DNA of 64,000 nucleotides from Lepidodermella squamata (Eukaryota; Animalia; Gastrotricha): NCBI GenBank assembly GCA_047495785.1, contig JBLDXI010000001.1:2356001-2420000 (forward strand), in the 5' to 3' direction. Below the pieces are notes generated by a model that did not search any database, was not told the DNA's origin, and worked only from the letters and a program-made list of their open reading frames with translations. Both the position numbers and the translations under genes were made by a program. Shown in pieces: positions 7,129 to 63,424 of the stretch (its first letter is position 1; every line of letters begins with the position of its first letter).

Positions 7129-7627
7129 TATCAAATATGGGGAAAATTTCTACGAAAACTGAAATTTACTGGTAAAAATAATCACGTAAAAATGATGCTG
7201 GTTTTAAAGCAATGTTAGCTTTTCGGGACTTCGTTAAATTGAAGAGATGTAATAACTTCGAAAACCATTTTTTCGCTGTTTTTGGCAAGTTCTGAGATAC
7301 TTAGCGCGATAGCTACATTCGAAGTTTGGGCTCTCGAATTGATAAACCGTAGTTACCGAAATATAAGCTCTCCCTCGTTTAGAGGCCTGGATAAATTTCG
7401 AATGGTGCCTAGGCACGTGCGAAACGTGTGCTCTGACGCACGTGCTGAACACTTCTTTGACATCACCAGCGAAATTTAGCAGCTGAGTAACCTGCTGAAA
7501 TGATTCATCAAGAGCTTATGCTTTCCTGGTCGCGTGCCCAGTTTTTCACTAGTAAAGAACTCTATAATAAGTGCAGCCAAATCAACGCAACTGACAAGTG
7601 ATTTCGGGTGGCTACTTCAACCTAATT

Positions 7628-15087: not shown

Positions 15088-15516
15088 ATGGGCGTCTTCA
15101 CGACGACCGACAACAGCACTAACATTGTTGGATGGCTGATGATTATACTCGGCGTTATCACTTTAATCGGTCTCATTTTCATAATCGTCTACACGGTTGA
15201 TACAACCGGGGACGATGACTTCGTCGCCTCGACTACGCCTTCTCCAAGATACCTAGACGATAATTCAGACGAAACTGACCAAACGACAGTTGACCCGCGC
15301 GTCCCAAACTGGGTTACCCTGGGCGTTTTCGATCTCAAGCTGAATGAAGACGGCGAATGGGTTGCAATTTTCAGGAATCAACCGCCGACACTGAAAAACT
15401 TGGATGAAACGACAACATTACCAATGACAACCACGACGGATGAAGATTCAACGCTATCAACGGACACGGATTCAGGCGAAACGACGTTATTTCGATTAAA
15501 TCGAGATTCAATTTGA
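15088..15516 (+). CDS. Small single-pass membrane protein with Thr/Asp-rich region, unknown function
   Basis: Intronless 142-aa ATG ORF with the TM helix WLMIILGVITLIGLIFIIVYTV followed by an acidic/Thr-rich tail. Its 3' end recurs in decayed form at ~18470-18620. Confidence 0.6.
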   Translation: MGVFTTTDNSTNIVGWLMIILGVITLIGLIFIIVYTVDTTGDDDFVASTTPSPRYLDDNSDETDQTTVDPRVPNWVTLGVFDLKLNEDGEWVAIFRNQPPTLKNLDETTTLPMTTTTDEDSTLSTDTDSGETTLFRLNRDSI

Positions 15517-15726
15517 GATCGAAGCAAGCAGTGTACCAAAGCATTTCAAAGAACTGGATTATGAAGCTGTTAACATCTGTGTAACATCTGCTTAACGAGA
15601 CTCACGTTGCGAAATAAAATTAACTTACATCAATGATTGACATATGGGACAGTTGAAAGGTTAATTAGACGAAACTACGAAGGTTTTGTTTTGAGCTTCT
15701 CTTTTGCATTCGAAGAAAATTCGCAC

Positions 15727-34300: not shown

Positions 34301-34707
34301 TCGTCAAGCAATACAACCGCTATTTAGCCTTTGGTAGCAACGTCAATGGCCAGAGAACGCTGGACGAAAATCTCGCGGATAACGCCGGGCTTCAAATCGC
34401 CTACGACGCCTGGAAATCAGTGAATGAGCCGATGAAAATCGACGATAGCCACTGGAGTTATTACGTCGAGTCGACGGCCGAAAATTTCCTTTTAAATTCT
34501 GAGCGGTTATTTTTTATAGCCTACGCCCAGCAGTGGTGCGCCTATGAGACGCCGGAGACAATCAAGTACCAACTGCTGAAGAGTGAACACGCGCCGTATC
34601 GGTTCCGCGTCAATGGCGCTGTGTCAAATATGCCGGCTTTCAGTGAGGCGTTTCGATGTCCGAAAAATTCGCCGATGAGTGCGAGAACGAAATGCTCAAT
34701 TTGGTGA
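31373..34707 (+). CDS. Neprilysin-like metallopeptidase (M13), paralog 2
   Basis: Approximate exons 31373-31543, 31593-31660, 31746-32896, 32959-33209 and 33997-34707. TM FLIFFLLIVLLIW, ICHSAKC..DPCSDFYEFSCG, NNAYY, HEMTH, ENLAD, HAP..RV and terminal CSIW. Confidence 0.9.
33320..33570 (+). repeat. Dispersed repeat family B (copies at ~33320-33570 +, ~36596-36825 +, ~55505-55677 -, ~58553-58720 +)
   Basis: Shared core aaaccc(g)atggtaac(t/a)gg..cggt..ttt..ccggtt, with extended similarity such as ttgattactatt.tcgt and tctcattttagag. Non-coding and probably a non-autonomous TE. Confidence 0.7.
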
Positions 34708-37838: not shown

Positions 37839-39476
37839 ATGTGGCGAGTTTTGACTACTTTCGGCCCGAAAGCTGAGCGTAACACCAAACCACTTCTGGA
37901 TCAATCGGTCGATCTAAGTGTGATTGAGCCGAAAATCGAACCGAGGCCTGAGTTTGGCGAAATTTGGCCGCGCACCTCAACCCTTCGATCTCAACGTCCA
38001 GCCTCTTCTTCCTCGTCTAACGATCGATCCATACCTTCTCCGCTCCCTCAGGTATTTATTTAAATTTTTCAATATTTAAATTTTAAAATTTCAATATTTT
38101 GTTGAATTTTGAATTCCATTTTCATTTTTCAATATCAATTTTCTGATTTTATCTTTTAGAATCCCGGCAACAATGACGACTACAAGCTCGTCCGTATGCT
38201 TGGCAGCGGTGGCTTTGGCGAGGCTTACTACGCCCGTCGGAAATCGGCCGCCACCTCGAAATCGACCGGCGTTGTCCTGAAACGAATGCGCACGTCCGAT
38301 AAGCACCAAGCGAAACGCCTCATGTGGGCACGTCGCGAGGCCGGCATTATGTCGGCTCTTTTTCACCCGCACGTCGTTCGGTTTTATCACGCCTTCGAAG
38401 AAGCCGCAACTGTTGTCATCGAAATGGAGTACTGCGACGGCGGCGATTTGCGCGCGTTCATTCGCTCTCGCAATGGTTCTTTTATTGCTGAGCGTCAAAT
38501 TCGCCACTGGTTTCATCAACTCACCCAAGCGGTTGCTTACATTCACGACCTCGGCATTGTTCATCGAGACATCAAATCCAAGGTAAACTAGAAAAATGTT
38601 TTGAAAATTGTGAGAATAAATGTGAAAATTTTGAAATTGAAAATGAAAAATTAATTATGATTTATGGAAAGTTTAAGGTGGATTTTTTAATCTTAATTTT
38701 TTAATTTTTTAATTTATTTTTGTGTTAATTTTAATTTTATTAATCATATTTCTTCAATTTTTCAGAATGTTTTCCTTTGCGATAACAATCGATCTGTGAA
38801 GCTCGGCGATTTCGGTTCGGCCAAGTACCTTGTCGATCGGCGCACTAATGAACCCAGTCTCGCCCGCACACGCGTCGGCACCAGCACCCATCACCCACCA
38901 GAATTCTGCCGCCGCCTACGTCGCGAGTACGGCACCGAGGTCGACGCATGGGCCATGGGCGTTCTTCTCTTCGAAATGGCCACGCTACAAATGCCATTCC
39001 AGGCCACGTCTCAGGTCGATCTAAGCGCGAAAATTCGCAGCGGTCAACGCGATCACGAAATTGCACCATCGATCTACTCGAACTCGCTGCGTCGCCTCGT
39101 CGATGTTTTGATGTCTCAAGACCCGGAAGAACGGCCGACCATGAAGCAGGTGCTTGATGATCGTTATTTCGTGACCTATGCTCGTTTTGTGAGGCGAGTC
39201 AATCGTAAACGAGCCCGCGCGTCGTCCGAGGCCGCCGCTGCTCTACTACCCGTCGCGCTTCGCCGAAACGACCGCCATCCGTCTCGCATGAATGAAATCC
39301 GCCCGCAATCGACTGGTCATGAAATGCTATTGACTCTTCTCGCTACTTCATCGCAGCAACAACAGCTACTTCAGCAGCAGACAAGTGGCATCGCCTCGGC
39401 ATCGGGATCGACCGGTAATTTATCGCCGCCGCCAACACTTCACTGGCTGTCGACTCAGCCGTCGCATTGCGTTTAA
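37839..39476 (+). CDS. NIMA-related (NEK-like) Ser/Thr protein kinase
   Basis: Approximate exons 37839-38051, 38160-38582 and 38767-39476. Motifs LGSGGFG, VVLKRM, HPHVVRFY, MEYCDGGDL, HRDIKSK|NVFL, KLGDFG, DAWAMG and ERPT. Confidence 0.88.
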
Positions 39477-40334: not shown

Positions 40335-42486
40335 ATGCTCAATTTGTTGACCTACGCGATTATTATTTCCGCTAATTTGTTACCAAAATGTGAGGCGGGA
40401 ATCAAGCAAAAGGTCATGGTTGTTTCTTTCGATGGCTTTGCACTTCATTATCTCAAAGCGGGCCGCAATTTGCCGTCTTTCGCCCGCCTACGCCGCGAGT
40501 CAACTTACACCGAATCCGCTCAAAGTGTCTTTCCGAGTAAATTTGCATTTTCCAACATTTTCCAAATGTTTACCTGAATTTGTAGGTGAAACGTTCCCTA
40601 ATCATTTTTCGATTGCAACTGGCCTTTACCCGGAATCCCATGGCATGGTATCGAACATTTTCTATGATCCAGATCAAAAATTTCTGTACAACGCGATGGG
40701 CTACGGTCTTGATTCTCGGCCCGATTTGGACTCTGCAGTTTGGTGGTCAGCGGTAAGTTTCAAAAATGAAAATAATTGAAAAACAGGATTTTAAAATTTA
40801 AATTTGATTTTTTTTTAATTATTACTTTAGGAGCCATTATGGGTCACAGCGCGCAAGCAGGGCCTAAAAACTGGGACATCGTGCTGGCCAGGCGATCGGG
40901 CTAAATACAAACCGGGCGATATGCAAGCGACGTTTCACCGAACCGATTTCACGATGGATATCCCATTTCGGAAACGCATCGACGAAGCCATTGAATGGTT
41001 GACGCGATATGACGTAGACCTTGCCTACCTTTACAGCTTCCAACCCGACGCGACCGGCCATCGTTTCGGCACGAATTGCACTGAAATGGAGGACACGTTG
41101 AAGAAGGTCGATGCCGATCTGGGTTATCTGTTAGATTCGCTTGAAAACGCTGGTTTCAATACGATGAATTTTCATTTGATCATCGTTTCCGATCATGGCA
41201 TGTGGAATCTGGAGCGCGAGGTTGTTTTCGATGATTACATGAATACGACGGAGCTGTTTGAACGAACGACTCGATTCGGTGCGAATGTCCCGTTTTGGCC
41301 TCATCCAGGTCGAGAGGAAGAGGCGCTAAAAACCCTCCAGTCGGTTGCCGAGAAGCATAGCGATTTATTTCAGGTAAATTACAGATAATTATTTTGACAT
41401 TCGAATTCAAAATCAATAATTGAGCTGAAGTTTCGATCGATATAAGAAAAGATCGTATCTGGTTTACCGCCATTTTTCCAAAAAATTCCTATCCAGGATT
41501 TATCTCGGAAATGGTTGATAGAAATAAAATTAAAATTATGGCTTTGGAGTCGGAACCTTGAAATGAATCATTTGTGATTTTTTTGTTTATTTTTTCTGTT
41601 TTGCGAATATGCTAATCAAGAATTGCGTGATGACAATTTTTTCCTCTGAATGCGGTATTTTTTTATTTTCCTTTGTTAATTGGGCATGGCTTTCGGGCTG
41701 TGCCCCACAATCAATCTGAGAAAATCATTTGAAAAATCCGGGTCACTCTGGATGCTAGGAGGCTTTAACGAGCTTCACCGCGGCCCAAGCCGCTAATAAA
41801 ACAAAAACAAATAAATGATTATTGATACTGCTCGGTATCAATCGAATTTAGGTGCGCAATAAATCCTTATTTCGGTTGTAAAAAATTATTCTGAAATTGA
41901 ATTTTCATCGTCAATTTTTCTTCAAGCCAAACGAGCTAATCCATCATTTGAATGTATTTTCAGGTCTATCCGAAGGCAAAACTACCCGAGCGGTATCATT
42001 ATCGAGCAAGTCCGCGAATCCCATCGATTGTCGCTGTCGGAAAAGTTGGCGCCTATTTGACGGCGACTCACAAATTTTCAATGAAGCGCCTGAAACTAAC
42101 GGCCGGCCACGGTTACGACCCTAGCGATTTCCGCATGCAGCCGATATTTTTCGCCCGCGGGCCGGCTTTTAAACGCAATTTCGACGCCTCCCCACTGACG
42201 AAAAATATGTCCACTAAGGTAATTCAAATTTTTTCGAAATTACTCAAGTGAATTTTTGATATTTTTTTAGGACATTTACGCGGTTGTTACGGAGCTCATT
42301 GGGATGAAATATCCGCCACCCGTGAACGCTTCTTACGCCAATGTTGAAGGCCTGTTCCGGGACGATTACAAATTTTTGACCGTCATCGATTTGCGACCCC
42401 GATCTCAATCAAATTCTGCCGCGACCTTGTATGGAATTTACGCTGCGACAATGTTACTACTGCTGAAAATATGTATTTCGAACTGA
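40335..42486 (+). CDS. Ectonucleotide pyrophosphatase/phosphodiesterase (ENPP4/5/6/7-like), probably GPI-anchored
   Basis: Signal peptide, VSFDGF, PS|ETFPNH with the Thr nucleophile, [30 protein letters not shown] and a hydrophobic C-terminus, spread over about 5 exons. Confidence 0.9.
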
Positions 42487-42700
42487 AAAATTGCTCCGGA
42501 ATTTTGATAAATGTTTACCTAATAATTATAAATAAGTGTTTAAATTATTAAGATCCTGCAAATACTGCCACCTAATTTTACGCCGTAAATGTGTTTTTTG
42601 TTCGATTTTTCTATGAATAAAATAAAACCTAATCGGCTCGCGATATAGTTGTAAAAAAAATTATATTTTCTTTCACAAAAATTCAGATATTTTTTTGAAA

Positions 42701-44176
42701 ATGAAGCTCTACTTTCGTGATACTCCTGATGTGGTTCAAACCGATAACCTTAGCCGCGTCTTGCTCAATCTTTTCGAATCGTCAACCAACACAGATATTG
42801 ACCTAATTCTCGACGATGGCTCTCGAATTAAAGCTCACCGCTCGATTTTGTCAGCGCATTCGCCAGCCTTTGCACGAATGCTCGGTGTTGGCAGTTTTAA
42901 GGAGGGTTTATCGGGCGAAGTGAAATTACCTGGAAAATCGAAACCGGCTGTCGATTTGCTGCTGCGGTATTTTTACTCTGGCTGCATTAAAATTGCCGAT
43001 GTTGATCTGGAAACGGCGTTGGCTGCTTTTGCTATGGCCCACGAGTACGAGGTGGACAAGTTCTTCAAAACAATGGCTAACCTACTGATAGAGGTGGCTA
43101 ATTTTGATTAAAATAACACGAATTTTTTTAAAAATATTCGTAAATTTTAGCATGCGATCGATGAAGACTCAGTTTGGCAAATTTTCGAACTGGCCTTGCT
43201 ATTCAACGAGGGCGAACTACTGGACGAGACCCGCGATTTCACCTACTCAAACGCGACAGAATGCCTGAAAAATGAATCATTTGTTCAGCTGTCAAAATCG
43301 GCTCTTCTCAATGTTTTGTCTGATGACTATCTATTTTCGCCGGAAATAAATGTCGCTCTAGCGGTTTGTCGGTGGCAAGAGCACAACAATTGCAGTGAAA
43401 TCAAAGAGGTGCTTGCAAAAATTCGATATTCGTTCATCAAGTTGGATGGCTTCACCCTCGAAGATATCGCTGCCTTGTATGATTTGTTGAAAGCGAATCA
43501 AATCGATTTAAAAAGTGTTGGAAAATCTGGTTCTGAGGCCAAAATGGCGAGAAAATTGTTTGTTCGATCCTACGGTATTTATCTAGGAACAAATCAATTT
43601 GATTGAAAAACTTATTTTCTAATTTGACAGCTCTACTAGATAATGGCACTCAAGTCGTTGGTATCGATAGCAAAATTTTGCTGGAGCCTTCCGTGCTGCG
43701 TGAAGACTCGGAGGTTGATTGTCAGGTTGCGAGACATGACTCTGTCATCATTACACTCCCGCGACCTCGGACAATTTCATCAATGTCATTCAGCATTCAT
43801 AGTAATGGCAAATCTTCCTGTTATTGTATTTTCGAGGTACGCGAGTCAAAAGCCGCGCCCTTCGAGGTGCTGCTCCCTTACGACAGCTCGAGCTTTCACT
43901 ATGGAGTGCAGATTCTTGTATTTCAAGCCCGGAAGATTTGTGAAGGTTGGACGTCATTTTGATACTTCTGATCTGTTTATACTTTCAATCTTACATCTAG
44001 TTAAAATAACGGGTGGCTCAGCATACCAGCATACCAGGTTCTACTCGATCCGTGCGTTTGAATGTCCGTCTACGACGTACCAACCGAAATTCGGTCAAAT
44101 TTTCGCTAAAGAAAGACCACCGTCTAATTTCAAGCTCTATCAGCTGAATGATATTGACCCAGATAGCATTTATTAG
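42701..44176 (+). CDS. BTB/POZ-BACK-discoidin-like protein, BTBD9-like paralog 2
   Basis: BTB (TDIDLILDDGSRIKAHRSILSAHSPAFARML), BACK (FVQLSKSALLNVLSDDYLFSPEINVALAVCRW) and C-terminal QILVFQARKICEVKITG..IRAFEC. Intron positions match the gene at 5147-7128. Confidence 0.82.
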
Positions 44177-44912
44177 ACTCAACGTCGAACAATTTGAGAT
44201 CAATGAAGTTCGCGACTGCTTTTTGACTTCAAGAATGGCTTGTTGCGTTCGTTTTCGAGTTCTTATAGAATATATTATATATATTATGTTTTATTAAATA
44301 TAATTCTCCCTCGTTGATTCAAGGATATACTTTACTTCGAATTATTGAAATATCTTATTAACTGTAACTTCATGATAACAGATCACCGAAAAAATACGAA
44401 TGAAAATGTCCGTTAAATAGGGTAAAAAATTACTTTGGGCAGTGGGGTCACTTTACCGTGCCTCGGGTGACTTTAAAAACTAAATCGGAATTTAGGCATG
44501 TTTTTTGAGCTGAAGTCTCATGAAAGGTTCAGCCTTTGCTTGAAAAGAAATAAAAAAAATAAAATTTGCTGAAATTCCAAAAACGATTGAATCACCTATT
44601 GGCCCAAGGGATTATTTTGGCGATTATACGCTTGTAGATATTCCAGCATTTTATTTCCGATAATTTTAGTAGAATGAACAAAATCCGACCGAAAACATCC
44701 TCATCGCGTGGAAATGTGATCGCGTGCTAATTAAAACACGCGTTTCTTGAACAAAGAAAGCCGTATTTTGCATTCGGAATCTTTTCCGTCTAGTTGTTTA
44801 TTTTTTTTAGTTTAAAACGTCATGAAGTAAAACTACTCTCAAGATACATAGAGGTATATAGGCTCACAGATCGTGTTGGTGTGTTGATTAACCCGGGAAT
44901 CCTATTGCGAAG

Positions 44913-47900
44913 ATGACGTCAGCCGATGTTCCAGTGCGATCAGCGCTTCGAACACTCTTCTTCCTGCGAAATTATTTTATCGCAATTTTAACGCCTATCC
45001 TCCTGGCGCCGTTGTTCATCTACGATGGGACCCAATACCAGGCCGCGGCTCGATGTGGCTACGTTCTGCTAATTCTCATTATTTTCTGGACAAGCGAATG
45101 CATCCCGATAGCTGTAACAGCTTTATTGCCAATGGCGCTGTATCCTCTACTCAAGATTGCTCCGGCAAGCGAATTGGCTCCAAAGTACATGGGTGTTAGT
45201 CACTTACTTTCCTTATTTAATTTTGAGAATTGTTTACCTTAAATTATTGAGGTTTAGATTTTTTATTCAAAAATATGCGCTCTTCAGAAAAATTTCAATG
45301 AATTTAAATCCTAATTAATTAAAATTCATTTGTTTTTGATATTTACTATCAAAACCAGGAAGTCAATATGGCTTTTGTTGGCAGCTACATTCTTGTTATT
45401 GCCGTTGAAAGTGCCAATCTTCATAAGCGATTCGCCTTGAAAGTTCTTACTCTGGTCGGCGCCCAGCCTCGCTGGCTCCTTTTCGGTTCACTTTGGTCCG
45501 GTTGCGTTCTATCGATGGTAATTTTTAGTAATTTTTAAATAAAATTAACTCGCAATTTTCCTTTTAATTTTTTAATTTTTTTCAGTTCACGAACAACACT
45601 GTTTGCTGCGCCCTTCATTTGCCAATTGTCAAAGCGATTGTTGAAGAACTTCGAAAAGCTTCGGCAGACGTCGAAACAGATGATGAATCACCAGCGACCG
45701 ATCGATCCCCATTATTGCAACCACTCTCGATTCAAATCGATCGCGAAACCGATTCTTCCAACAACAGCAGTCACCTAGATGATTCAAACTCCTCGGATAA
45801 TTCGCTGCTAATTAGCCAACAACCTCAGCAAACAGGTAGTGCTTTGAACGCCTTGGATGCCGCCTTGAGAAAAGCAGTCACGCCTAAAAAAGAGAAGCCG
45901 CATCACGATAGTGCCAATTTATCGAGTGAAACAATCGCTGGTATCGAGAAAATGCTGCTGATCGCGGCGGCTTACAGCGCAACGCTAGGTGGCATGTGTT
46001 CGATTATCGGTTGTATGGGCAATTTGGTGGTAATGGATCTCACCGAGTCGATTTATAAGGCGAATAATTACACGTGCACGCAGCCGATCAGTTTTACTTC
46101 TTGGTTTGAAATCGGAACACCGCTCGGATTCATTTTCACATTTTTCGCTTGGATTTGGCTCCAGATCTTTTTTCTGGGACCAAGGTATGTCAAGATAATT
46201 TTTTGTAAATTAATTATTTATCATTATTAATTAATTTATTAATTACTAATTTATTTTTTCATTAATTTATTCAACAAAAATTCGGTCCAGTTCGGTTGAT
46301 GCCAGATGGCGAAGATCATTGACTTCTGGGCGTTTATTTTAGTTATTTGTTTTCGTCCCAACATGTAGCTGGAAGCTGGACGTCGAACCCTGCGCTTCTT
46401 ACTGTTCATATTATTCCTGCGGGGTTGAGCGTGCCGAATGCTGATGCTAATCACGGCTGCAGTCTTTAGACCTTTTTGCGGGGCATGTGTCGCTTGAATG
46501 ATAGCGGCGGAATCTGAATTCAGCTGAGGATAGAAACTTAGTTTCGTTAGGACTATACTTAATTTGGATGGCTACACAACATTCGAAAGTTCGAAATAGC
46601 GGAGAAAGAATAGATATTGTCCGGTAGTTGCGAAGATTTGAGGTGAATCTTTGTTCGGCGGTGAAATTCACGATAGCCTGCGATCGGCGAAATTAGTTTG
46701 AAAGTGGTCCAAGAGGTCGTAGTTCCCCATAATGGGAGAAGAGCAATAAAGGTCAAAATTCAGGCCGTTATTGAGTTTCATTTTCCATGGTTGTCATAAT
46801 ATCTTCAACTTCGGCCCTAATAACAGCCTCCTTATCATCGTCGTTCGTCTTTAGTCGACAGCGCGTAGGTATTTAAGGATTGACTTCAAGGTTCGATTAT
46901 ACCTCTCCAAGAGGCCATTTGCCAAAAAAACACAAAGAAAATCATGGAAAAATTCTGAAAAACCTGAATATATCAATCTTGAACTTTCCAGTTTCGAGGC
47001 AGACAAGGTGTATTTTCGAACCGGATTTTCCGAGCTGAGTATCGAACTCCGCCACTAAATCGGCCCACTTATCGAGAAAAGCATAGAAGAAACTCCAAAC
47101 ATAGCCAGGCTGTTTTAATCGTCTAAAAGATCGATGTAATTCGAATAATTGAAAATTCTAAAATCATTAGTCAAATTTTCAAAATAATTTCAATTTATTT
47201 GAATCCTCTCAACTTGGTGATTCTTTAACTGACTTTAGGTACATGTGGTCCATCTGGGTCGTAAAACCAGTTCGACGCCTGCTCGGCCTCGGCTGCGGCC
47301 TGATCACGTGCGAGTCGAAAATCAACACCACCGACGAGCAAGCCGCCCGAGTGACCAATGCCATCAATCGTTTGTACTCCGAATTAGAGCCTATGGGCTT
47401 CCAACAGTACGCTGTTCTCGGCCATTGCGCCGTCATGGCCGGGCTGCTATTCACGCGGCAGCTATCAGCCGGCGGCGATCAGTTCATCGGCTGGGGCATA
47501 ATTGCGCCTTCATTTGTCAAAGAATCCACCGCAACAATTTTAGTCTCAATTTCGCTCTTCATTTTCCCGAAATCTCTCTCAACATCATCCGAGCCATTGC
47601 TGAGTTGGAAAAATGTCGATCAATCATTCCCGGTCAGTGTTTTACTCTTGATTGGCGGCGGCATGGCGGCGGCTGAGGGCGCGAAAGAATCTGGGTTATC
47701 AGCCCTTTCTGCCCCATTTTTGCTCGATGCTATGGAGGGCTTATCGCTGACCCAGGTCATACTAATTATATGCCTAATTTCTGCTGCACTGACCGAATTT
47801 ACGTCGAACGTCGCTCTCGTCGCTTTGCTGTGCCCTATCGTCGGAAAATTAGTATGAATAATTTTTAAAAATTTCGATTTTTTTTTAAATTTATTATTTA

Positions 47901-49232: not shown

Positions 49233-51050
49233 ATGCCAAGGGCTCCAGAACCCGCACCGCCAAAAGGCGGAAAACCGCCACCCCCTGCGCAGCCATCGAA
49301 GGGTGATCCAAAGTCGAAACAAGCCGCCCCACCCCCTCAGCAGCAGCACGTTTCTCGGAAGGCTCAGCACAACCAGGAAGCGCCGCCTCCACCGCCTGGT
49401 AACCGCAAAAACTCGGTCGAAAAGGTGAAAACCTACGTGGTTGACTCGCCGAAGCAGTTGGTGGCATCTAAAAACGCCAATCAGCCCGAGCCGCTGCCAC
49501 CGGGTCGAAAAAGTCCGAAGCCCAAACCGAGACAGGATAAGCAGGAGGTCTTCGCGCGGACCCACCATGCTCCGGATCAACCAGTCCGGGCATCCGGGGA
49601 GAAACCGAAACCAGGCAAGCCGGGTCAGAAAATTTCCTTCGGTGGCTGGAATGAGTTCATCTCGGACGAAGTCGATAGGCTACAGGGTAAATCGAATAAA
49701 CCGGCCGGGAAGGGCCGTTCGGAGCCGCAACCACCGCCGCCACCAGCTTTGAAACCGAGTAAACCCGGCCAGGGTGACCAGGCGAAGAAATCTGGGAAAT
49801 ACACGACTACGGTGGTTTACGAAGTTGTCGACGATTATGACGACCCGAGACGGTATAAAAAGAAGCCCGAGGCCAAACCGGCGAATGGTAAGCTCCCACC
49901 TGTTGCTACGAAAAACCAGCCGGTCCCTAACAAGGCGGCGCCTGGGCCCTCTCGGAACAGGATCACGACTATCCCCGAGGAGCCGCCGACCCCCCGTCAA
50001 AGCAAGCCGGGAAAAATCTCGGAGCAGCCGCAAAAATCAGGTAAATCGATCGAACAACCCCGACATGAACCTCCGGGTGTCAAAATGGGTGCTGCTCATA
50101 ATCGGAAGCTGTCATTCCCGAGCCCGGTCGATCCCGTTGGGAAACATCGAATTTCGCTGATACCTGAAGAGCCTGACTGGGTTCATCAAGCTGCAGCGCG
50201 GTCGAATAGTAAACCCAACGCTCCTCCTCCACCACCACCACCTGCTCATAGGAAGGGTGACCCGCCTCAAACGTCTTCTAAGCAACCACCGCCGAGTAAT
50301 AAACAAATCACAGCGCAACAACTCCCGCAACGGAAAGGTGATCCATCACCTGGCCGAGGGCCCCAGGGTGCTCCGGGTGCTGCTGGATCTAAAGGTTCGA
50401 GTAGTAAGCCAAACGCACCCCAGAGGAAGGAAGACCCATCACCCGGAAGAGGATCCCAGGGTGCTCCCGGGGCGAAGGGTCCTAAGCCAGATCCAAAGCA
50501 GCAAAATCAGCCTGGAAGACCTCAAAAACAGGAAAATGCGCAATCTCGGCAAGCTCCGCCGGCTGGAAAACAGAACCAAACTGGCGCCAGGGCCCCGCCG
50601 GAGCCTCCATCAAAGGGGAAACCTCAACAGCAGCAACAGAAGGGGCAAACTCAAACTCAGAAACCAAATCCGCCGGCTGGAAAGGCGCGGCAATCTAATT
50701 CGAATGTAACCCCTCGAGAATCTGTTGATCGTAAAAAGCCTCAGCCACCCTCGAAGAGTGCCCCGAAAAAGGGTGTCTCCCTATCAACGGGTGACCTCCC
50801 GCGAACTGTCGCGAAATCAACAGGTAAAACTGCTGGCAAAACCAAGGAGCCTCCTGTTGAGGTCGAAGAGGTGCCTGACCTTCAACATCGGCCGAGCTTC
50901 AAGAGCAAATATCACGCGAATTTCAAGCGGTTTCCTATACTGGCGGAGCAAACTGATACGGAGAAGCGGAGAGGATCCTTCGCCTACTACCGAGGTGGTG
51001 TCGTTCTGGCGCGGGGGATCCACGCCGCACTTCGAGGGGGAAATTTTTGA
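49233..51050 (+). CDS. Pro/Lys/Gln/Gly-rich intrinsically disordered protein (605 aa), unknown function
   Basis: Uninterrupted 1.8-kb GC-rich ORF between AT-rich flanks, with poly-Pro runs and an internal repeat PQRK(G/E)DPSPGRG(P/S)QGAPGA. AATAAA at ~51143. Confidence 0.7.
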   Translation: MPRAPEPAPPKGGKPPPPAQPSKGDPKSKQAAPPPQQQHVSRKAQHNQEAPPPPPGNRKNSVEKVKTYVVDSPKQLVASKNANQPEPLPPGRKSPKPKPRQDKQEVFARTHHAPDQPVRASGEKPKPGKPGQKISFGGWNEFISDEVDRLQGKSNKPAGKGRSEPQPPPPPALKPSKPGQGDQAKKSGKYTTTVVYEVVDDYDDPRRYKKKPEAKPANGKLPPVATKNQPVPNKAAPGPSRNRITTIPEEPPTPRQSKPGKISEQPQKSGKSIEQPRHEPPGVKMGAAHNRKLSFPSPVDPVGKHRISLIPEEPDWVHQAAARSNSKPNAPPPPPPPAHRKGDPPQTSSKQPPPSNKQITAQQLPQRKGDPSPGRGPQGAPGAAGSKGSSSKPNAPQRKEDPSPGRGSQGAPGAKGPKPDPKQQNQPGRPQKQENAQSRQAPPAGKQNQTGARAPPEPPSKGKPQQQQQKGQTQTQKPNPPAGKARQSNSNVTPRESVDRKKPQPPSKSAPKKGVSLSTGDLPRTVAKSTGKTAGKTKEPPVEVEEVPDLQHRPSFKSKYHANFKRFPILAEQTDTEKRRGSFAYYRGGVVLARGIHAALRGGNF

Positions 51051-51228: not shown

Positions 51229-52454
51229 TCAATTGCATTTATTAGGACCGGTGCCGCGTCTCTGATTACTGAGTTTGCACCCACTGAAGGTTGAAGACGA
51301 GGATGAACTGGCGCCAACTAAGGCGTCATCGTCGTTGTAGAGAAGCCGTCGAATTTTGATGCCAGAATCGCCTTTTCGACGCGTCCGCTCGAGCAGCATC
51401 TGGTCTTTAATATCGGCCAAATTTCGAAGTTGTGCTGCTAGCGATATGAATGTTTCGTTGACGTTCACCATTTCCTTAGCCGAGGTCTCCATAAACATGG
51501 CTCCAAACTCATTTGCCATCCTCTAAAAATTAAAATTAAATAAAAAAAAATTACAGTAATAATAATGAGTGAATAGTAAAACTGCATACTCTTATTGTCG
51601 CACAACTCGATTAACTTACACTACATATGTACTAATTGGTTCAAAGTTAGCGGCCTGCGTGCCCTTTTGAAACCACGAATTTCTTTTTGTACCAAATTTT
51701 TATACGAAAGTATATTTTTCGAAATAAACATAATAATAATAATAATAATAATAATATTTAGCTATTTTTACCTGTCCCTCCAGCCGTGAAACGACTCGAT
51801 TGCGTACTAGGTCACATTTACAAGCGACGAGAACAATTTTGAGGTCATCTCGGCCGTGTTTTTTGGCCTCGCCGATCCAGTGCGGAACATTTGAATATGA
51901 TGCCTAATAATAAAAAATCTACCTTAAAATTTGAAATAAATGGAAAATTTAAATTTACCCCGCAGGTTACATCGTAAGCCACGACTACAGCATCAGCATT
52001 TTGGTAGTAATTTCGAGTGAGAGCTTTGAATCTTTCTTGACCAGCAGTATCCCACTGATATAAAATTTCAATAATTTCAGAAATTAAATCTTAGAAAATA
52101 TTACTCACAATAACAAGTTTGATGATTTTATCATCGAATTCGATGCGTCTCATGACCTAAAAAAAAAGAAATTAGGTCAACATTTTGGAAATGGAAGCGT
52201 GAACATACAAAATCGACGCCGAAAGTCGCTGGGTATCCATCATCAAAAATTTCACCCTAAATTTCAATGAAATAATTTGCAGTCAATGCCAAAGACTCGG
52301 CGAATTGTTTTACCTGAAAGCGCCGTAGTAAGCAAGATTTACCAACTGAGGAATCACCAACAATTATGAGCTTGAAAGCATAGTCTCTGAAATATATTGT
52401 TGAACTAAAAATCAAATTTCTAAGAATAATTTGAACTTACTCAGATGATGGCAT
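51229..52454 (-). CDS. Rab-family small GTPase (Rab30/Rab19/Rab43-like, divergent)
   Basis: Seven short exons give [58 protein letters not shown] and C-terminal KCN. Confidence 0.88.
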
Positions 52455-55077: not shown

Positions 55078-55316
55078 GTGATTCATCTCACATCTAGAAT
55101 CTAGATCAGTGAATATGCTGATAAAATTCCCATGGCACATGAAATCTTAGCCGCGAGGTGCTTCAGTCGAAATTTATGTAACAAGTGGGCATGACTTTCG
55201 GGTCAAGCCCCAAACACTGTGAAAGCCACTGTGAAAAACAGGACGTCAAGGTTCGGTGAAATATCCGATTTGTTAGGAGGTTCTCACGAGCCTCACCGCG
55301 ACATTAGTCGCTAATC
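55078..55316 (+). repeat. Dispersed repeat family A (copies at ~41680-41797 +, 55078-55316 +, ~57110-57345 -, ~58925-59123 -)
   Basis: Shared gggcatg(a/g)ctttcggg..cccc and ggagg..cgagc(c/t)tcaccgcg...cgctaat. One end is gattcatct; a short hairpin gcgac-atta-gtcgc lies near the other end. Confidence 0.75.
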
Positions 55317-56289
55317 TTGAAATGAACAAAACATACCTAAAGGCTGAAGATTAGGTTGAGCCAAGAGTTGCTCATGAGCTCCGGCGCTGAGTCGCACGCG
55401 AAGAGGTCAAGTCCCTTATATGTGAAACAATCCAATAAGAGACACACGACCACGATAATTAAAAATGACTTTTCTTAGAAAAAATATCTAGAAATGCGGT
55501 TCATTCTGGTAAAATACCGATAATTACCAAATACCAAACCATCGGGTTTTTCCGGACTTCCTCCGGTTAATTAAAATTAATTCGAACTTCGATATCATCA
55601 CGGATGATTTTTGGTAAATGGTCCCTTCAAGTCTTATTTCGAAGAAATTGTTCGCAAAAAGTTCCCAAATTGATAAAAAAAAATGGCTGCGCAAAGGATA
55701 GGCTTCATATACTTCACTCGCGTGATGGACTATTCTCGTTACCTGGTCAGGGAATTCATCGCCGGCTCGGACAGTTCAATGTTCCTGTATTTCCGAGAAA
55801 TCAGTTATCTTTTTGCCAAGCTGTATAAGCATAAGGATAATCTGTATACGCTCGAACAACGCCTGAGATTGCAACTGAATCACTTATGGTCCGAATTCGG
55901 TAAAATCAACAACTCCGAGTTATCATCCTATATCCTATTTAAGCGACAAAATTTCACTTTCCACGCAGATTCTTGGATTTTTACTGAAATGATATTGAAA
56001 AAAATTGCTTTGAAGCATTTTCTGTTGTGATATTTTAGAGCGGAAAGTATACCTAGCCAAAAGTCACGAATTAATGAATGAAAGAAAATAGAAGCTTCTC
56101 AAGAGCTTTATATTAGATATTAGGCTTCATTAGTTTCAATAACGTGTTCACACGAATCCCTATTTCTAACATTACAAAGAGCAAAACTGCAACATTATAG
56201 TTTTGACTTTCGAAAGTTATTATTTCCGCTGTTGCAAATTTTCAACTTAGCAATAATTATTCGTAACATTTTATTAATTATTGAAATAG

Positions 56290-59200
56290 ATGATGGTAAT
56301 ACTCGAGAGTTTATTGCTTTGTTTAATCGTTGTACCGGCGTCTTATGCCGCAAATGCGGCTAAAACGCAAGAACTTTTCAACGCTATCAATGCCGGAAAT
56401 TTGGCCCAGGTCACATCGGCTATAGCCGGCGGGGCCGACATTAACGGGCGAGATACGCGTCCGAGTTCAAACGGTGCCACGCCGTTGATAACTGCGACAA
56501 AAAAGCAGAACATTGCCATCGTGCAGTTGCTGCTCAAAAGCACCGGAATCAACTTGTCAGAGGGCGACGACTACGGCAATACAGCTCTTCATTTGGCTGT
56601 TACAACCGGATCAGTTGAAATCGTAAAATTGCTGCTCCAAGGTTAGTGGACTGAATTACCAAGTATAGACCGAAATATTCCCTCTCCGCGAATTTTCGGA
56701 ATTTCAAGAAATTGTATAAAAATGATTTTGTGAGAACCAAAAATTTCTTGAAAAATTGGCTAAAATTTCGGTTTTTTTGAATATTTTCTAGAACACACAT
56801 TTACTCCTTTCTTTTGACTGGCGGTTTGAGAACTAATTTTATTACAATTTCTTTTTACCCATCTCGGTCTCAACTCTATAATTTTCTCAGACTCAAGAAT
56901 AAGTTATCAATCTATTTTTGCTGAAATTTACGATAGTTTTTAATCTGAATTACATACGAAATCCCAAAAGATTCGGAACAACTGATTGTTCGGATCGACG
57001 AATTGCTTGCATATTTTTTATTAAACCGTTTAACCGTTCAGTTTAACCCTCTGATTTCTTCAAAGCAGCGTCTGCTGATTTCTTGAATCGGAAATTTTAT
57101 TTCTAAATCATTAGCGACTTGCGTCGCAGTGAGGCTGGTTAAAGCCCCCGGACATCCGGATATTTTACCGGACCTTTGCGGCTTAGTTTCACAGTGGCTT
57201 TCACTTTGTCAGTGGGTCTGGGGCACGGCCCGAAAGCCATGCCCAAATGTCAAGTTTTCAAGTTGAAACCACCTCGCAGGAAAAAACGCATCTATCCCTG
57301 AAATCTTATTTACATATGCACATTTTATAAGCGAGATGAATCATCAATCCACCTAAAAAAACTGAGAAAATAAATGATTTTATTTGCAAATTATTCAATT
57401 TTTTTAAATTTGTTTTTGCAGGTGACTCGGATCCTAATTCTCAGAATAAGGCAAGCCAAACTCCACTCATCACCTGTCTCGCATCCACAGTCGCCTGTCC
57501 AGGTGACATCATAGTCGCCCTTTTAAATCGATCCGCCTCCCTCGACCTGGCCGATCGGCAGGGCAACACAGCCCTGGAACTGGCGAAAAACACCGAAATC
57601 ATCCCAGTCTACCTCTCAGTCCTCGCCGGTTGTATCGTTACAACAAATGATGACTGCGTCAACGCTCTGTTGGCTCCACCTCAATTAATCAGGCTCGGAA
57701 TCGATATGATGAGCCGACCAGTCGCTGGATTCGCCCGGGATGACGACACGTTGCTATCAGTCGCCGTCAGAACAGGCCAAAGACAAGTTGTCGAGCAGTT
57801 GCTAGACGCAGGGGCTGACCCTGATAGACCGCCTTATATCCTTACATTAGCAGCTCAAAGTGGGGAAATAGCCCTAGTTCGACTTCTAATGGGCTACGGC
57901 GTTGCTTTGAATTCGAAAAGCCCGCAGGATTGCAACATGACGGCAGTTATGGCTTGCGCGTTGTCCGACAAGGTCGTCAATCTATGCACCCTGGAAATTT
58001 TCGACTATTTAATTCGGCAAAAGGCGTCCCTTAGCGGGGTTGATTGCTTCGGCCGCGGGGTTGACGCCATCGCAAAATCGAATAAGAACGACCGGTCGTT
58101 TTCGGATAGAATCGAGAGTGAGTTCAGTGGGCTGGCGGTTGCGGTGGGCTCGACTCAGGCGCCGCAGCGGGTTCAAACGAATGCTATTGGCCGGGAGATC
58201 ACGGTGTGGCCGTGTGGTTATGACAAGAAGGAATTGATTACGACGACGACAACGACTACAACGCAGCAGCCGACGACGAGAAGAGCCGGGCAGAGGGGGC
58301 AAAGGCCGTCGTTCACGCAGATGCAAACGACCAGGGGGACGGAAGCTTGGTTTCCGTGGATGGTAAATTTTTTAAATTCAGAAATATTTAATATTAAGGG
58401 AACAATTTAAAATCGATTACTTAGTTGTATTGTTTAATTCTCTCCCATAATTTGTTGAATTATTACAATAATGTACGACAATTTGACTTTGAAACAGGGG
58501 CGATCCAGACCCTCCGAAGCATTTCTCATAGTTTGCCGAAGAATCCGAACCATTTATCCAATTAGGAACTTTTTGCGAACAATTTTTGCTAGCTTAAGAG
58601 ACCATTTACCGCTAATCGTGATTCTATCGAAGAAATTACAAATTTACCGGAGGAAGCTCGGAAAACCCGATGGTAACAGGTAATTTACCCGGTTGAACCG
58701 GATTTCTCAGGATTTTTCCTCTTAAAACAGTAAAAAAAACTAGTTGATTATCGTTTCAAGTTTGGAAATTTTGGACATGACCTCTTCACACCCGAATCAA
58801 CGCCGAAGCTCATAAACGAAATCGGCATATGCCGTAGTTGCACCTCTTTGTCGGCACTTAGATGTTCTTTGTAGTGCCAGGCTTGTATTTCGGCTACTAC
58901 GGTAATTTGTTCATTTCATGATTATAGCGACTAATGTCGCGGTGAGGCTCGTTAGATCCTCCTGACAAATCGGATATTTCACCGATCCTTGTGGTTGGGG
59001 CTTTACCCGAAGGTCATGCCCGATTGTGAAATATATTCCCAATGAAGCGCCTCGCGGCTAAGATTTCATGTGTCATAGAAATTTTATTAGCATATTCACT
59101 TCTCTATAAATAAGATGAATCACACAAAAAAATCACAGAACAAATATAATAATGAATAATAAATAAATATATTTAATTAATTACGATTAGTTAATTTAAA

Positions 59201-60480
59201 TTCTTATCAGCAAAAAATTGGGGGGTGTTGTGGGATACTTCTACATGACATTAAACGAAGATTAAGCGGGATTGGGGTCGGAATTTTGACGGAAGCCTGT
59301 TAGGATTTTACTTTATATTTTGTTGCTTTTTTCGATGGGACTTTGTTTTATTTTGCAATACATTTTTCAGGCTCGTTTGAGGCTGAGCAGCGCTGGGAAG
59401 TCGGCCGAGTACTGCGGTGCGAGTATAATCTCCGCTAATTGGCTGCTCACAGCCGCTCACTGCGTCCGTAATAAGCTGAACGTCGACATTCAGATGGGCA
59501 ACCACAACTTTTCACAAATCGAAGACGGCCAGGCCGACCCGCAACCGGCACAGAACGTCGTCATCCACCCATCGTACAACCCAGATACGCAAGACTACGA
59601 CTTCGCCCTGTTACAGCTAAATGTCCCATTCTATCGATTTACCGCGAAAATGCAGCCGATTTGCTTGCCTGACCACCCGTTTAAAATGTGTGACTCATCG
59701 GTTGATACCAGCGATGATACAATGAGCATGGTTGACCAGTGTGACCAGGTCGAGGCGGCTGGTTGGGGCCTGAATGAGTTCAGCCAGAAGACACCGGCGC
59801 TGCAAAAGGTCACGTTGAATGTGAAGCCCTACGGTGAATGCGCGACGAAAATTGTTGGAGAAAACGACGAAAATGCAGAGCCTCTGAGACTCAGTGATGT
59901 TCACATATGCGCGGGCAGTGATGATGGCCAGGACACTTGCCAAGGTGACAGGTATGGACTAGACAATTATTTTAAAAAATTTCAATATTTTTCAATTTCA
60001 ATTTTTTTCATACTTATATTGAAATTCTATCCATTATTTGAAGAATCATTTAGAAATTTAGATTTAGAATTTAGAAATCATTTAGAAATATAATTTTTTC
60101 AAATTTTTGTAATATTTTGATTTTTCATAAGTACGTAACCACTTTAAATGTTTCAATTTTTAATTTCGAAAACTCTAAATCAATTTTCTTCAATTTTTAT
60201 TTATTTACTTTCTAACAGTGGCGGCCCTTTGATGTGTAAGAAAGATGGCCGATGGTATGCTATTGGCATCGTCAGTTTTGGTCGGCAAGATTGCGGAGAA
60301 AAAGGAGTGCCTGGTAAATATTAGCATTAAATTTCAAAAAATCTCGAAATTATTCTGCGAATTTTTATAGCTGTTTATTCGAGGGTTTGCAAAGTTGTCG
60401 ACTGGATAAAAAATGTCACGAAATTCGACTTTCTTGACGGAAATGCCAACGACAATGGCCGCATCAGATCATCGGGCTAA
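56290..60480 (+). CDS. Secreted ankyrin-repeat / trypsin-like serine protease fusion protein
   Basis: Exons 56290-56641, 57422-58362, 59371-59951, 60219-60313 and 60371-60480 are phase-compatible. Signal MMVILESLLLCLIVVPASYA, ANK repeats, then PCG..TTTTTTTT linker. Exon 2 ends GTEAWFPWM and continues ARLRL..CGASIISANWLLTAAHC, DYDFALLQL, QDTCQGDS|GGPL, GIVSFG..CG..GVPAVYSRV..WI. Confidence 0.85.
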
Positions 60481-60856
60481 TTTTGTGCCGAAATAACCCG
60501 ATTTGCAATTAATTGATTTTGAAGAATCGCTGTTTGATAAAAATAAGTTAACAAATAAATAAATGAGAAATATAACACGAGGGCAGGGTATAAATAATTT
60601 ATATAATATTTTCCTCAATCAAGCTATAGTGCATTTTTTATCATGGGCCACAATGCATGCTATATTCCTTTTATTATTAGCTACGTATACACTAATAATA
60701 ACGAATGTTCCTTTCATGTTTTTTATACTGCTGGCATAGTATATGGAATTCTCGAGAGCATTACATCTCTCATTCTCTCTCACTGCTCCCTATACTACAA
60801 TTTCAGAAAAAAACACATCAGATTTTTACAAAGAGTGATAAGCAGATTTCTTGAAG

Positions 60857-62190
60857 ATGAGGCAATGCAAGGTAATAATTCTGTTACTTTTTATTTCCTT
60901 TTCGAAATTTGTATTTTAGGTATGCGATGCTTCAATCGCCCGTCGAAAAGTCTACCAGCCAAGTATTTGCGAGGCTTGCCAGAAATTTTTCCGCCGAAAT
61001 GTGAGAAACGCGGCTAATTTGCGGTGTAAAAAAGGCCACGGCGGCTGCCTGGTGTTATGGGTCTTCAAACGAGACATTTGCCCGCTATGCCGCATGGAAA
61101 AGTGCCGACAAGTTGGCATGCAAAGTGAGATTTCGTTTTCTTTAAAATTTCACTTTATTTTAAATTATTATCTTATAGGCAGGGTACATCAGCAGGAAAG
61201 TGATATTTCGTCAGAAGGCTCAGTTAGTCTATCGCCCGCGACCTCAGAATGCGTACCTGTATTTCCCGACCGGCACCAATTGGCCGAGGCAGAGAGACAT
61301 TTCCAGCAGTTGATGCAGGCTCTTACGTCACTTCACGACTTGAACTTCGTAAGTTTGACTCGGTCCAGTTTACTCATGTAATTTACTGGATTTAAACAGC
61401 TCGAAATGAAGAATCCTGATTTGATCATCGACGACGAAGCAACTTTGCTAAGATTAACAAAAATCGACCTTGAAATTGCAATGAAGGCAATCCGATCTTT
61501 TGCAAATTTCGTAGCTGGTTAGCATCGTAATCGTCTGCATTTTTTTATTTCCAATTATTTCTCAACAGACGCCGAAGCACTTGAGACCTCTGAAATTGAT
61601 TTGCTGATGAATGGCTTCGGGCCAAAAATAGCGGCAGTCTACGACGCGTTACCTTGCGCTTCCAGTTCGTGTTTATTAGGAATGGACGCCAGTTTAAAAG
61701 ATCCTTTAATCAAGCTCAACCCTGATATCAGTAACATGGTTTATCGCGCTGAGCGGTTCAACGATGTTGTCCTCGAGTGGTCGCCATCAATTGTCGAAAG
61801 CGCAATTTTCGTCTACCTCGTGTTTTTTTCAGGTTGAAATCATTTTCGACAAAAAATCCGCCTTAATTTTTGAAATTGTTCAACACAGAAAATTGTATAC
61901 AAAACGCTCGAGTTGCTAGAATCAGACGTCGCCTTTGGTCGCTGCTAAATTTATGGAACTCGAACACAGCCGCAAGACTGGGCCTTCCAGATGTGAATGA
62001 TTACGTATCGCAACGTCGCCAGCATTTGGAGCATTGCATAGCTGTTATGCAATGGGCAGTTGACGAATTTGTGAGGGTCTCATGTGGCAACTTCAAAGAT
62101 GAGATGATGCAAAACTTCACGTTTGATGACGACTTGGTGCGGTGCTGCTTTCAAGAGGAAACTCCAAAGTTGACCGAAATCACGACATGA
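60857..62190 (+). CDS. Divergent nuclear hormone receptor (C4 zinc-finger DBD plus diverged LBD-like region)
   Basis: MRQCK|VCDAS..SICEACQKFFRRNV..LRCKKGHGGC..CPLCRMEKCRQVGM contains all eight Zn-binding Cys. Several downstream helical exons run to the stop at 62190. Confidence 0.8.
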
Positions 62191-62800: not shown

Positions 62801-63424
62801 ATGCGTTTCGTTCTCCTAGCGGCTATTATTGCCCTATTTTGCATTGGTAATTGACCCACTTTTTTGTCAATTTATTTCACATTATTTAAACTTGCAGTCG
62901 CCAGCTCGGCGAACAAGGGGATTGGCAAGCGTGGACGTGGCAACAATGTTTCCGCCTCGGTGAACAAGAACTCGGCCTCGGCCTCGGCCGGTGACAACCG
63001 TCGTCGTGGCTTCTTCGGCCACAAGAGTCGTCGCGGCAACTTCGCCTCCGCCTCCGTCAACCGCCGCTCCGCCTCGGCTGCTGCCGGCAACAACCGTGGC
63101 CGTCGCGGATTCTTTGGTCGCCGTCGTGGTGGCAACTACGCCTCAGCCTCCGTCAACAAGAACTCCGCCTCGGCGAATGCTGGTGACTACCGTGGTCACC
63201 GTGGCCATTTCTTCGGCCGCCGTGGCTCCCGCTCGTCTGGTTCCTTCTACGGCCGTCGCCATGGACGCGGTTTCTATGGCCGTCACGGTTACGGTCGTCG
63301 TGGATTCTACGGTCGCGGTCGCTATGGCTACGGCTACGGTCGTTTCGGCCACCGTGGTTTCTACAGCGGCTCGTCCTCGTCCGGCGATTTCTATGGCCGT
63401 CGTAATGGCTGGTTCTGGCATTAA
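62801..63424 (+). CDS. Secreted Gly/Arg/Tyr/Phe-rich repetitive cationic peptide precursor
   Basis: Exon 1 (62801-62846, MRFVLLAAIIALFCI) is followed by an intron to 62897. Exon 2 has three GNxxSASVN(K/R)xSASAxAG(D/N)xR..GxFFG repeats and a GFYGR/GYG-rich tail. Confidence 0.8.

Follow-up and report, generated by a model that had tools for sequence, protein, structure and literature searches.

A 64,000-nucleotide stretch of the genome of the gastrotrich Lepidodermella squamata (assembly GCA_047495785.1, contig JBLDXI010000001.1, positions 2,356,001 to 2,420,000 of the forward strand; here the window) carries a five-exon gene, referred to below as the ANK-S1 gene. Its conceptual product includes, in order, a signal-like N-terminus, about nine ankyrin (ANK) repeats, a linker that is predicted to be disordered and contains a Cys-Gly motif and a poly-Thr run, and a chymotrypsin-fold protease domain of family S1A. 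The ANK repeats and the protease very probably belong to one gene. The interpretation that we favour, with moderate confidence and on the basis of the sequence, is that the product is a secreted mosaic S1A protease with an ANK solenoid as its arm, which would exist as a single chain and have low or ligand-dependent activity. It appears to be a mosaic S1 protease with a new N-terminal arm and no new kind of system, and the gene is a well-supported prediction, not a discovery.

Structure of the gene and its exon junctions

All five exons lie on the + strand. Read in the DNA and assembled by script, they give a coding sequence of 2079 nt with 0 internal stops and a product of 692 amino acids (aa). 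An in-frame stop stands directly 5′ of the start ATG. Exon 1 begins with the start codon and the signal-peptide-like N-terminus (aa 1 to ~20; 56290..56349), which has the core LLLCLIVV followed by A-S-Y-A/A (slashes mark cleavage or splice boundaries). The remainder (56350..56641) encodes ANK repeats 1-3 and ends in phase 1 inside a Gly codon, at the donor G/GTTAGT. The ANK part of exon 2 (aa 118 to ~358; 57422..58143) matches Pfam ANK and consists of two ANK blocks with a low-confidence connector between them. The following linker or pro-region (aa 359-412; 58144..58305), as read from the sequence, contains W-P-C382-G, a run of eight Thr and the basic stretch RRAGQRGQR. The tail of exon 2 (aa 413-431; 58306..58362) carries a degenerate activation segment and the first S1 strand (PSFTQMQTTRGTEAWFPWM) and ends in phase 0 at the donor ATG/GTAAAT. 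Exon 3 (59371..59951) supplies the S1 core, with His57 (59458-59460), Asp102 (59599-59601), Asp189 (59932-59934), Gly193 and Asp194, and ends with the AG of the Ser195 codon. Exon 4 (60219..60313) brings the T of that codon, GGP, C201, Ser214 (AGT, 60274-60276)-Phe215-Gly216 and C220. Exon 5 (60371..60480) includes Ala226 (codon G/CT), Cys663 at the C232 position, a VDWI motif, an 18-aa tail and the TAA stop (60478-60480). A pattern scan located an AATAAA polyadenylation-like signal 74 nt 3′ of the stop (60554..60559, +).

All four introns are of the GT..AG type with pyrimidine-rich acceptors, and their phases are 1, 0, 2 and 1. The GC content is 44-54% in the exons as against 18-36% in the introns. 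Introns 1 and 2 measure 780 and 1008 nt and seem to have been enlarged by insertions, since each holds one copy of a dispersed repeat of a family of ~200 nt, detected by blastn within the window (57110..57246, +, in intron 1; 58906..59090, +, in intron 2, the latter with 75% identity over 215 nt to a copy at 55118-55330). This family is SINE- or MITE-like (~140-215 nt) and has further copies at 41680-41797 (-) and 55118-55330 (-), with 68-75% identity between copies. Directly 5′ of the start codon, the sequence TTGAAATAG/ATGATG (56278-56292 of the window) resembles a splice acceptor abutting the ATG and could serve in trans-splicing or mark where an untranslated upstream exon ends.

The possibility that this is a non-expressed or decaying chimera, a young pseudogene born of local rearrangement in an ANK-rich cluster with its frame intact by chance, can be weighed against this gene structure. 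The degenerate activation segment, the repeat insertions in both large introns and the fact that searches found no orthologue would fit such an origin. But 692 open codons spread over five exons with four canonical introns, the strong GC contrast between exons and introns, a polyadenylation signal in place and the integrity of every catalytic and disulfide position make it very improbable indeed.

The junctions were judged on the sequence, by whether each restores a domain. At the exon 1/2 junction (aa 117/118), an ANK profile built solely from unrelated database proteins, with the query excluded, runs unbroken over aa 21-135 and crosses the junction in repeat register. Exon 2 itself is a single open frame that passes from ANK through W-P-C-G, the eight-Thr run and the basic stretch into TTRGTEAWFPWM. 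At the exon 2/3 junction, a trypsin profile derived from 83 database homologues gives an alignment that starts in the linker and continues across ...TEAWFPWM/ARLRL... into exon 3. The last 20 codons of exon 2 lift the score against this profile from 216.7 to 226.7 bits (about +10), while 200 shuffles of the 20-residue tail gave a mean of 217.9 bits (standard deviation 1.45, maximum 225.2). Among 65 GT sites between 56000 and 59370 that would donate in phase 0 with 20 open codons upstream, the donor at 58362 ranks best by the trypsin profile. No other trypsin-like sequence is present anywhere in the window.

The join between exons 2 and 3 is also where an arrangement as two genes would differ. 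An ANK gene would then read through the donor at 58362 to the stop at 58408-58410 and the protease would start within intron 2, with the ATG at 59335 (MGLCFILQYIFQ...) as its candidate start. A naive list of open reading frames (ORFs) does show the ANK and protease ORFs apart, and the 1008-nt intron 2 is AT-rich and contains a repeat insertion. A stand-alone protease, however, would be deprived of S1 residues 16-30, including the conserved P-W strand (the first beta-strand), and would leave Cys529 at the C122 position without a partner; its score is 218.0 bits, compared with 226.7 when the exon 2 tail is included. The 12-residue hydrophobic start at 59335 appears in reality to be the polypyrimidine tract of the acceptor, and the last 50 codons of exon 2 (the C-G motif, the linker and TEA-FPWM) make sense only as an S1 pro-region. 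We therefore consider two separate genes improbable and infer a single gene model in which the ANK repeats and the protease are fused.

An initial annotation of the same DNA had proposed the junctions at 57422 and 58362/59371 and the stop at 60480, and independent derivation led to the same coordinates. It had also located the fusion junction within exon 2 in one frame, and exon 2 is indeed open from the ANK repeats to the FPWM strand. The evidence for fusion now appears stronger than was stated there, in view of the repeat register across exons 1 and 2, the FPWM strand and the predicted pairing of Cys382. Its remark that the ANK repeats sit where clip, CUB or LDLa modules normally do agrees with the domain content, ANK being the only module N-terminal of the S1 domain.

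The ankyrin arm, the protease domain and its activation segment

The ANK arm extends from ~aa 21 to ~aa 358 and comprises roughly nine repeats in two blocks. Pfam Ank_2 matches exon 1 (aa 29-116) with 61 bits and a second Ank_2 match reaches 50 bits; ANK was also identified in exon 2, and the ANK hits, like those of Trypsin, exceed their Pfam cutoffs. The independent ANK profile aligns in addition to aa 120-329, for a total coverage of aa 21-329. An AlphaFold2 model computed from the exon 2 product and an alignment of unrelated ANK stretches is helical over residues 1-240, with high per-residue confidence (pLDDT) except at 68-83 and 99-103, within a connector at 68-103. Its last 73 residues are disordered, the pLDDT of the linker being below 50. 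The top PDB matches of the model in Foldseek, each with a probability of 1.00, are DARPin-DARPin fusions, the ankyrin repeat clusters (ARCs) of tankyrase and ankyrin-B/R. Profile and predicted fold thus both point to tandem 33-residue helix-turn-helix repeats, as expected of an ankyrin-repeat protein. The arm contains eight cysteines, an even number. In the linker (aa 359-416), the Cys codon of W-P-C382-G lies at 58213-58215 and the eight Thr codons at 58240-58263, and the basic stretch follows.

Pfam Trypsin (PF00089) matches exon 3 with 109.2 bits (profile positions 23-179) and exon 4 with 21.8 bits (181-206), for a cutoff of 20.6. The spliced model scores 225 bits against the 83-homologue trypsin profile and aligns over aa 400-674. 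TAAHC (His461 = His57), DYDFALL (Asp508 = Asp102) and QDTCQGDSGGP (Asp619 = 189, Gly623 = 193, Ser625 = 195) are all present, as are Cys191, Gln192, Asp194 and Ser214-Phe215-Gly216. The Ser195 codon is split by intron 3 into AG (59950-59951) and T (60219) and is formed only once exons 3 and 4 are spliced. The nearest PDB structures of exon 3 are kallikrein-8, factor VII, trypsins and protein C (E ~1e-15), and the nearest solved structures and database proteins are only ~30-34% identical to the S1 domain. With the family profile, the triad together with Gly193 and the conserved disulfide positions, the domain can be assigned to peptidase family S1A, in which it seems to be a divergent member without a specific subfamily.

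From Cys382 onwards, the 12 cysteines of the protein fit the six classical disulfide positions: C1-C122, C42-C58, C128-C232, C136-C201, C168-C182 and C191-C220. Cys529, at the C122 position in exon 3, has as its sole available partner Cys382, which is encoded in exon 2 just after the ANK arm. If paired as predicted, this 12-cysteine complement fits an oxidising, extracellular life.

The S1 pocket carries Asp189 and Ala in place of Gly at position 226, and so is not fully canonical. As in G226A variants of trypsin, this Ala should make the pocket narrower and reduce activity toward Arg. The initial annotation had reported TAAHC, DFALL and GDSGGP as intact and AGY codons for both Ser195 (AG/T, split by an intron) and Ser214 (AGT, 60274-60276); the three motifs are found in the spliced model and both codons can be read in the DNA. 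Its prediction of Arg/Lys specificity holds insofar as Asp189 is present; because of Ala226 it is reasonable yet not clean. Its further proposal, that QMQ-TTRG replaces the usual R-IVGG start, is borne out in that R-IVGG is absent and that one of two alignments agrees, while the other places the residues differently.

The activation segment runs from R412 to M431 (...FTQMQTTRGTEAWFPWM) and its alignment is ambiguous. HMMER, in an ungapped alignment, places Gln417 at position 16, whereas MAFFT sets T420-T-R-G beneath I-V-G-G with a 3-residue deletion before F-P-W. Neither yields a basic P1 or a hydrophobic (Ile/Val) residue 16, so that the R/K15-I/V16 activation bond is missing. No IVGG-like motif or hidden canonical IVGG exon was found in any + frame from 57422 to 59400. 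By comparison, R/K occupies P1 in 39 of the 60 retrieved homologues that have a recognisable I/V-x-G-G-type motif. An N-terminus freed by cutting behind Arg422 or Arg412 would have the wrong length, too short or too long, to reach the Asp194 pocket. The classical Ile16 switch therefore cannot work as usual, despite the retention of Asp194. Glu stands at position 40 and Arg at position 32, which means that the Asp194-His40-Ser32 zymogen triad is absent; motif counting puts Gln at 156 and Lys at 157.

The missing switch can be explained in another way, in which the same fused, secreted protein carries an S1 domain that is a pseudoprotease, locked in a zymogen-like state for want of an Ile16 N-terminus and serving as a binding module, its triad still there because function was lost only recently or because the structure requires it. 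The absence of an R/K-I/V site, the 3-residue deletion in the N-terminal segment and Ala226 in the S1 pocket are all compatible with it. In human PRSS23, a 2026 study found the triad kept, Ile16, Asp194 and His40 lost and no detectable activity (PMC13194640). It is this precedent of a secreted vertebrate S1 protein, whose Ile16-Asp194 switch is dismantled and whose activity was not measurable although the triad is intact (PMC13194640), that makes the pseudoprotease a serious alternative to the suggestion of the initial annotation that activation may be allosteric or the enzyme weak. Both proteins have a secreted or putatively secreted S1 domain with the triad kept, no Ile/Val16 N-terminus (Gln or Thr stands there in ANK-S1) and no His40. 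Against the features that characterise PRSS23 (PMC13194640), the ANK-S1 protein misses the Ile16 half and has Glu for His40 but retains Asp194, which is Ala in PRSS23. PRSS23 has no ANK repeats, and no sequence relationship between the two was seen beyond the family level. ANK-S1 further keeps Gly193, Asp189, Ser214, Gly216 and all six disulfide positions, and the full set argues against a pseudoprotease because its persistence would be unexpected in the absence of catalytic selection. His40 and Ser32, which stabilise the zymogen state, are absent as well. We accordingly hold a pseudoprotease to be unlikely, if still deserving attention.

For the favoured single-chain protease, we infer the following scheme. 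A cleavable signal peptide would send the protein into the endoplasmic reticulum (ER), and the ~nine ANK repeats would form an arm for protein binding or targeting. This arm would be connected with the protease domain by a flexible Thr-rich linker, probably O-glycosylated, and a Cys382-Cys529 disulfide of the C1-C122 type would tether the linker to that domain. The catalytic set appears complete (His57, Asp102, Ser195, Gly193, Asp194 and Asp189). Because there is no Arg/Lys-Ile/Val activation bond, the protein would most probably remain a single chain and work without the Ile16-Asp194 switch, with trypsin-like activity that is low or depends on a ligand. The zymogen-stabilising His40/Ser32 pair is absent too, as it is in proteases with appreciable single-chain activity.

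Secretory context and neighbouring genes

The N-terminus (MMVILESLLLCLIVVPASYA/A...) contains the most hydrophobic 19-residue window of the protein (aa 1-19, Kyte-Doolittle 2.14); its cleavage site was placed by eye. This signal-peptide-like sequence is absent from the initial annotation. Only one internal window (1.89, aa 134-152) exceeds 1.6, the usual threshold for a transmembrane (TM) segment, and it is no such segment but a pair of ANK helices with Pro, Gly and Asp in it. A TM helix between the ANK repeats and the protease, which would place the ANK repeats in the cytosol, was considered and rejected, as no TM segment lies there. The ANK arm and the disulfide-rich protease would consequently both face the lumen.

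Other genes in the window also combine ANK repeats with features of the secretory pathway. On the - strand, 30421-25742 looks like a large secreted mosaic gene with a signal-like start (MKILSLIAIIISSVRS) at 30421. Its ANK ORFs (30421-28763 and 28670-28029, -) follow that start, and the first has 13 N-x-S/T sequons where 4.6 would be expected. Pfam confirms at least six Sushi/CCP domains at 28005-26688 (-). A single open exon at 26656-25742 (-) then passes from Sushi (22.4 bits, cutoff 20.7) directly into ANK repeats. Between the ANK ORF and the first Sushi exon (~28062 / 27985, -) there is no GT donor in the required phase 1; the join fits only a GC-AG intron (AAAG/GCATGA ... TTTCAG/CC) or a weak upstream donor. 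An AATAAA stands just before the stop of the ANK ORF near 28062 (-), and the locus may comprise one gene or two. Two tandem paralogous ANK genes (~15049-17882 and 18933-20933, +) have internal poly-Thr linkers and significant sequon enrichment. The exon at 15049-15513, which precedes the first, encodes a TM-like segment and a Ser/Thr/Asp-rich stalk, and in the second a 666-aa ORF stays in frame across an apparent short AT-rich intron.

Compared with shuffled sequences, the neighbouring ANK ORFs have 13 N-x-S/T sequons vs 4.6, 9 vs 2.2, 9 vs 3.2, 6 vs 1.9 and 4 vs 0.9. This is an excess of 2-4 times the composition expectation, with P from under 0.0005 to 0.0045 (P <= 0.003 for the first four). 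The neighbourhood lends support to the idea of an extracellular use of ANK repeats in this genome.

Several points weigh against the proposal of a secreted, active ANK-S1 protease. The signal-like N-terminus has no basic n-region, and the ANK arm of this protein, in contrast to its neighbours, is not enriched in sequons (3 vs 2.8). With Ala226 and without the Ile16 switch, the enzyme could be barely active or inactive. Relatives of the fusion were not found either: an exhaustive HMMER search, in which the 313 aa of exon 2 were compared with 1.84 billion representatives, returned 9610 ANK proteins of generic type and neither an orthologue nor a self match. A word-indexed search with the trypsin core, covering proteins of 106-338 aa and blind to longer fusions, gave as its best hits ordinary trypsins 33-34% identical, none with ANK, and a metagenome scan with the same core produced no match.

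Related searches gave a similar picture. Six giant ANK proteins from the exon 2 search, when scanned with Pfam, contained ANK only and no protease domain. The 553-aa ANK ORF nearby matches generic ANK proteins, and PF00089 is absent from all 120 of its best relatives (304-968 aa). Exact look-ups of eight ORFs of the window found no match in the sequence collection, and Rfam and tRNA scans of the window were blank. Full-text searches, whose scope is the literature and not the domain architectures of predicted proteomes, returned no paper on an ANK-trypsin protein; for extracellular ankyrin they returned a latrotoxin review and nothing else relevant. Since relatives of ANK-S1 were not found and the M13_N exon of a neighbouring gene matches only one database protein, the genome would seem to represent a poorly sampled, fast-evolving lineage.

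That M13_N exon belongs to one of two divergent M13 (neprilysin-like) metallopeptidase genes, 24724-21699 (-) and 31805-34707 (+), which lie on either side of the ANK-Sushi gene. A type II TM anchor is encoded within the gene at 24724-21699 (-) itself, and the single match of the M13_N exon of this gene has 22% identity. A fusion of ANK repeats with an M13 peptidase nearby was considered and rejected, as this N-terminal anchor belongs to the M13 gene itself.

The remainder of the window is of mixed content. A nuclear-receptor gene (60920-62187, +; zf-C4, 40.8 bits, with atypical zinc-finger spacing) begins a few hundred bases past the protease stop, which indicates a compact genome. Together with the Sushi, EB and S1A domains, this zf-C4 receptor also marks the DNA as that of an animal. 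Two ORFs are of low complexity: a repetitive Gly/Arg/Tyr-rich one of 186 aa (62864-63424, +) and a Pro/Lys/Gln-rich one of 605 aa (49233-51047, +) with no Pfam match. Small Cys-rich ORFs at 2994-3734 and 12487-14162 (+) look secreted, and one matches the EB module (PF01683, 26.3 bits). Two BTB/BACK paralogues, a protein kinase, a type I phosphodiesterase (ENPP-like), an SLC13-type sodium:sulfate/citrate symporter and the C-terminal exon of a Ras-family GTPase were located at 5963-7149 (-) and 42626-43959 (+), 38160-39473 (+), 40351-42248 (+), 44892-47854 (+) and 51232-51522 (-).

Known systems and possible significance

The closest comparison is with mosaic S1A proteases such as the clip-domain proteases of arthropods and the type II transmembrane serine proteases matriptase, hepsin and enteropeptidase. 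Like them, ANK-S1 has a C-terminal chymotrypsin-fold domain with Asp189, predicted here to be extracellular, and a linker cysteine placed to pair with C122, which would keep the regulatory arm attached. The role ascribed to their N-terminal modules is targeting or regulation of the enzyme, and the ANK-S1 arm may be likened to these. It differs in being an ANK solenoid, normally a cytosolic module, where clip, CUB, LDLa, SRCR or Sushi modules are usual; no clip, SEA, LDLa, SRCR or CUB domain was detected in Pfam scans of the ANK-S1 exons. Moreover, its N-terminus resembles a cleavable signal and not a signal anchor, and the R/K-IVGG bond is missing. Classification as a clip-domain serine protease was set aside, as exons 1-2 contain no clip in Pfam scans and there is no activation bond. 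A type II transmembrane serine protease was likewise rejected: the hydrophobic segment starts at residue 1 without a tail, there is no internal TM segment and the stem consists of ANK repeats only.

Some S1 proteases, among them the single-chain-active plasminogen activators tPA and vampire-bat DSPA and cofactor-activated zymogens (prothrombin-staphylocoagulase), can adopt an active conformation without or before Ile16 cleavage. This group does not have the Asp194-His40-Ser32 zymogen triad, and in tPA Lys156 pairs with Asp194. ANK-S1 resembles the group in the absence of the triad. The tPA solution is not obviously copied, however, because position 156 is Gln and the Lys lies at 157; ANK-S1 also has no kringle or finger domains, and its activity is only predicted.

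The complement proteases MASP, C1r and C1s share with ANK-S1 an AGY codon for Ser195 and the architecture of a mosaic extracellular protease, as predicted for ANK-S1, and Sushi (CCP) domains occur in the neighbouring ANK gene. Unlike them, ANK-S1 has no CUB, EGF or CCP domains and has the C42-C58 His-loop disulfide positions. Membership of the MASP/C1r/C1s lineage was rejected: the Ser195 codon does agree, yet C42 and C58 have both been kept, and the protease domain is split by three introns and is not encoded by a single exon. Finally, latrotoxins, secreted spider toxins, are, as ANK-S1 may be, a rare animal case of ANK repeats acting extracellularly. In contrast to ANK-S1 they are pore formers with no protease domain and no classical signal peptide, and no sequence similarity to ANK-S1 was observed.

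The cascades of clotting, complement, moulting and immunity run on mosaic S1 proteases, whose N-terminal modules determine the place and time of their action. ANK repeats, one of the most widespread kinds of protein-binding module, are almost always intracellular. If the favoured interpretation is true, a naturally secreted ANK-protease with a disulfide tether would extend the targeting modules of extracellular proteases by a new one and would be a natural counterpart of engineered DARPin-enzyme fusions. It would also provide, beside tPA and PRSS23, a further natural test case of an S1 domain without the Ile16 switch, here with Asp194 and the active site kept. Considered with the Sushi-ANK and sequon-rich ANK genes, it would mean that the ANK fold has entered the secretory pathway in one animal lineage. 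A more speculative extension, which we regard as doubtful, is that of a lineage-specific family of extracellular ANK mosaics (ANK-Sushi, membrane-anchored ANK and ANK-S1), in which the solenoid of ANK-S1 would be an exosite that binds a partner and so switches on a single-chain trypsin-like domain that is never cleaved. Were this the case, cofactor-type activation within one polypeptide would replace the universal Ile16 cleavage switch.

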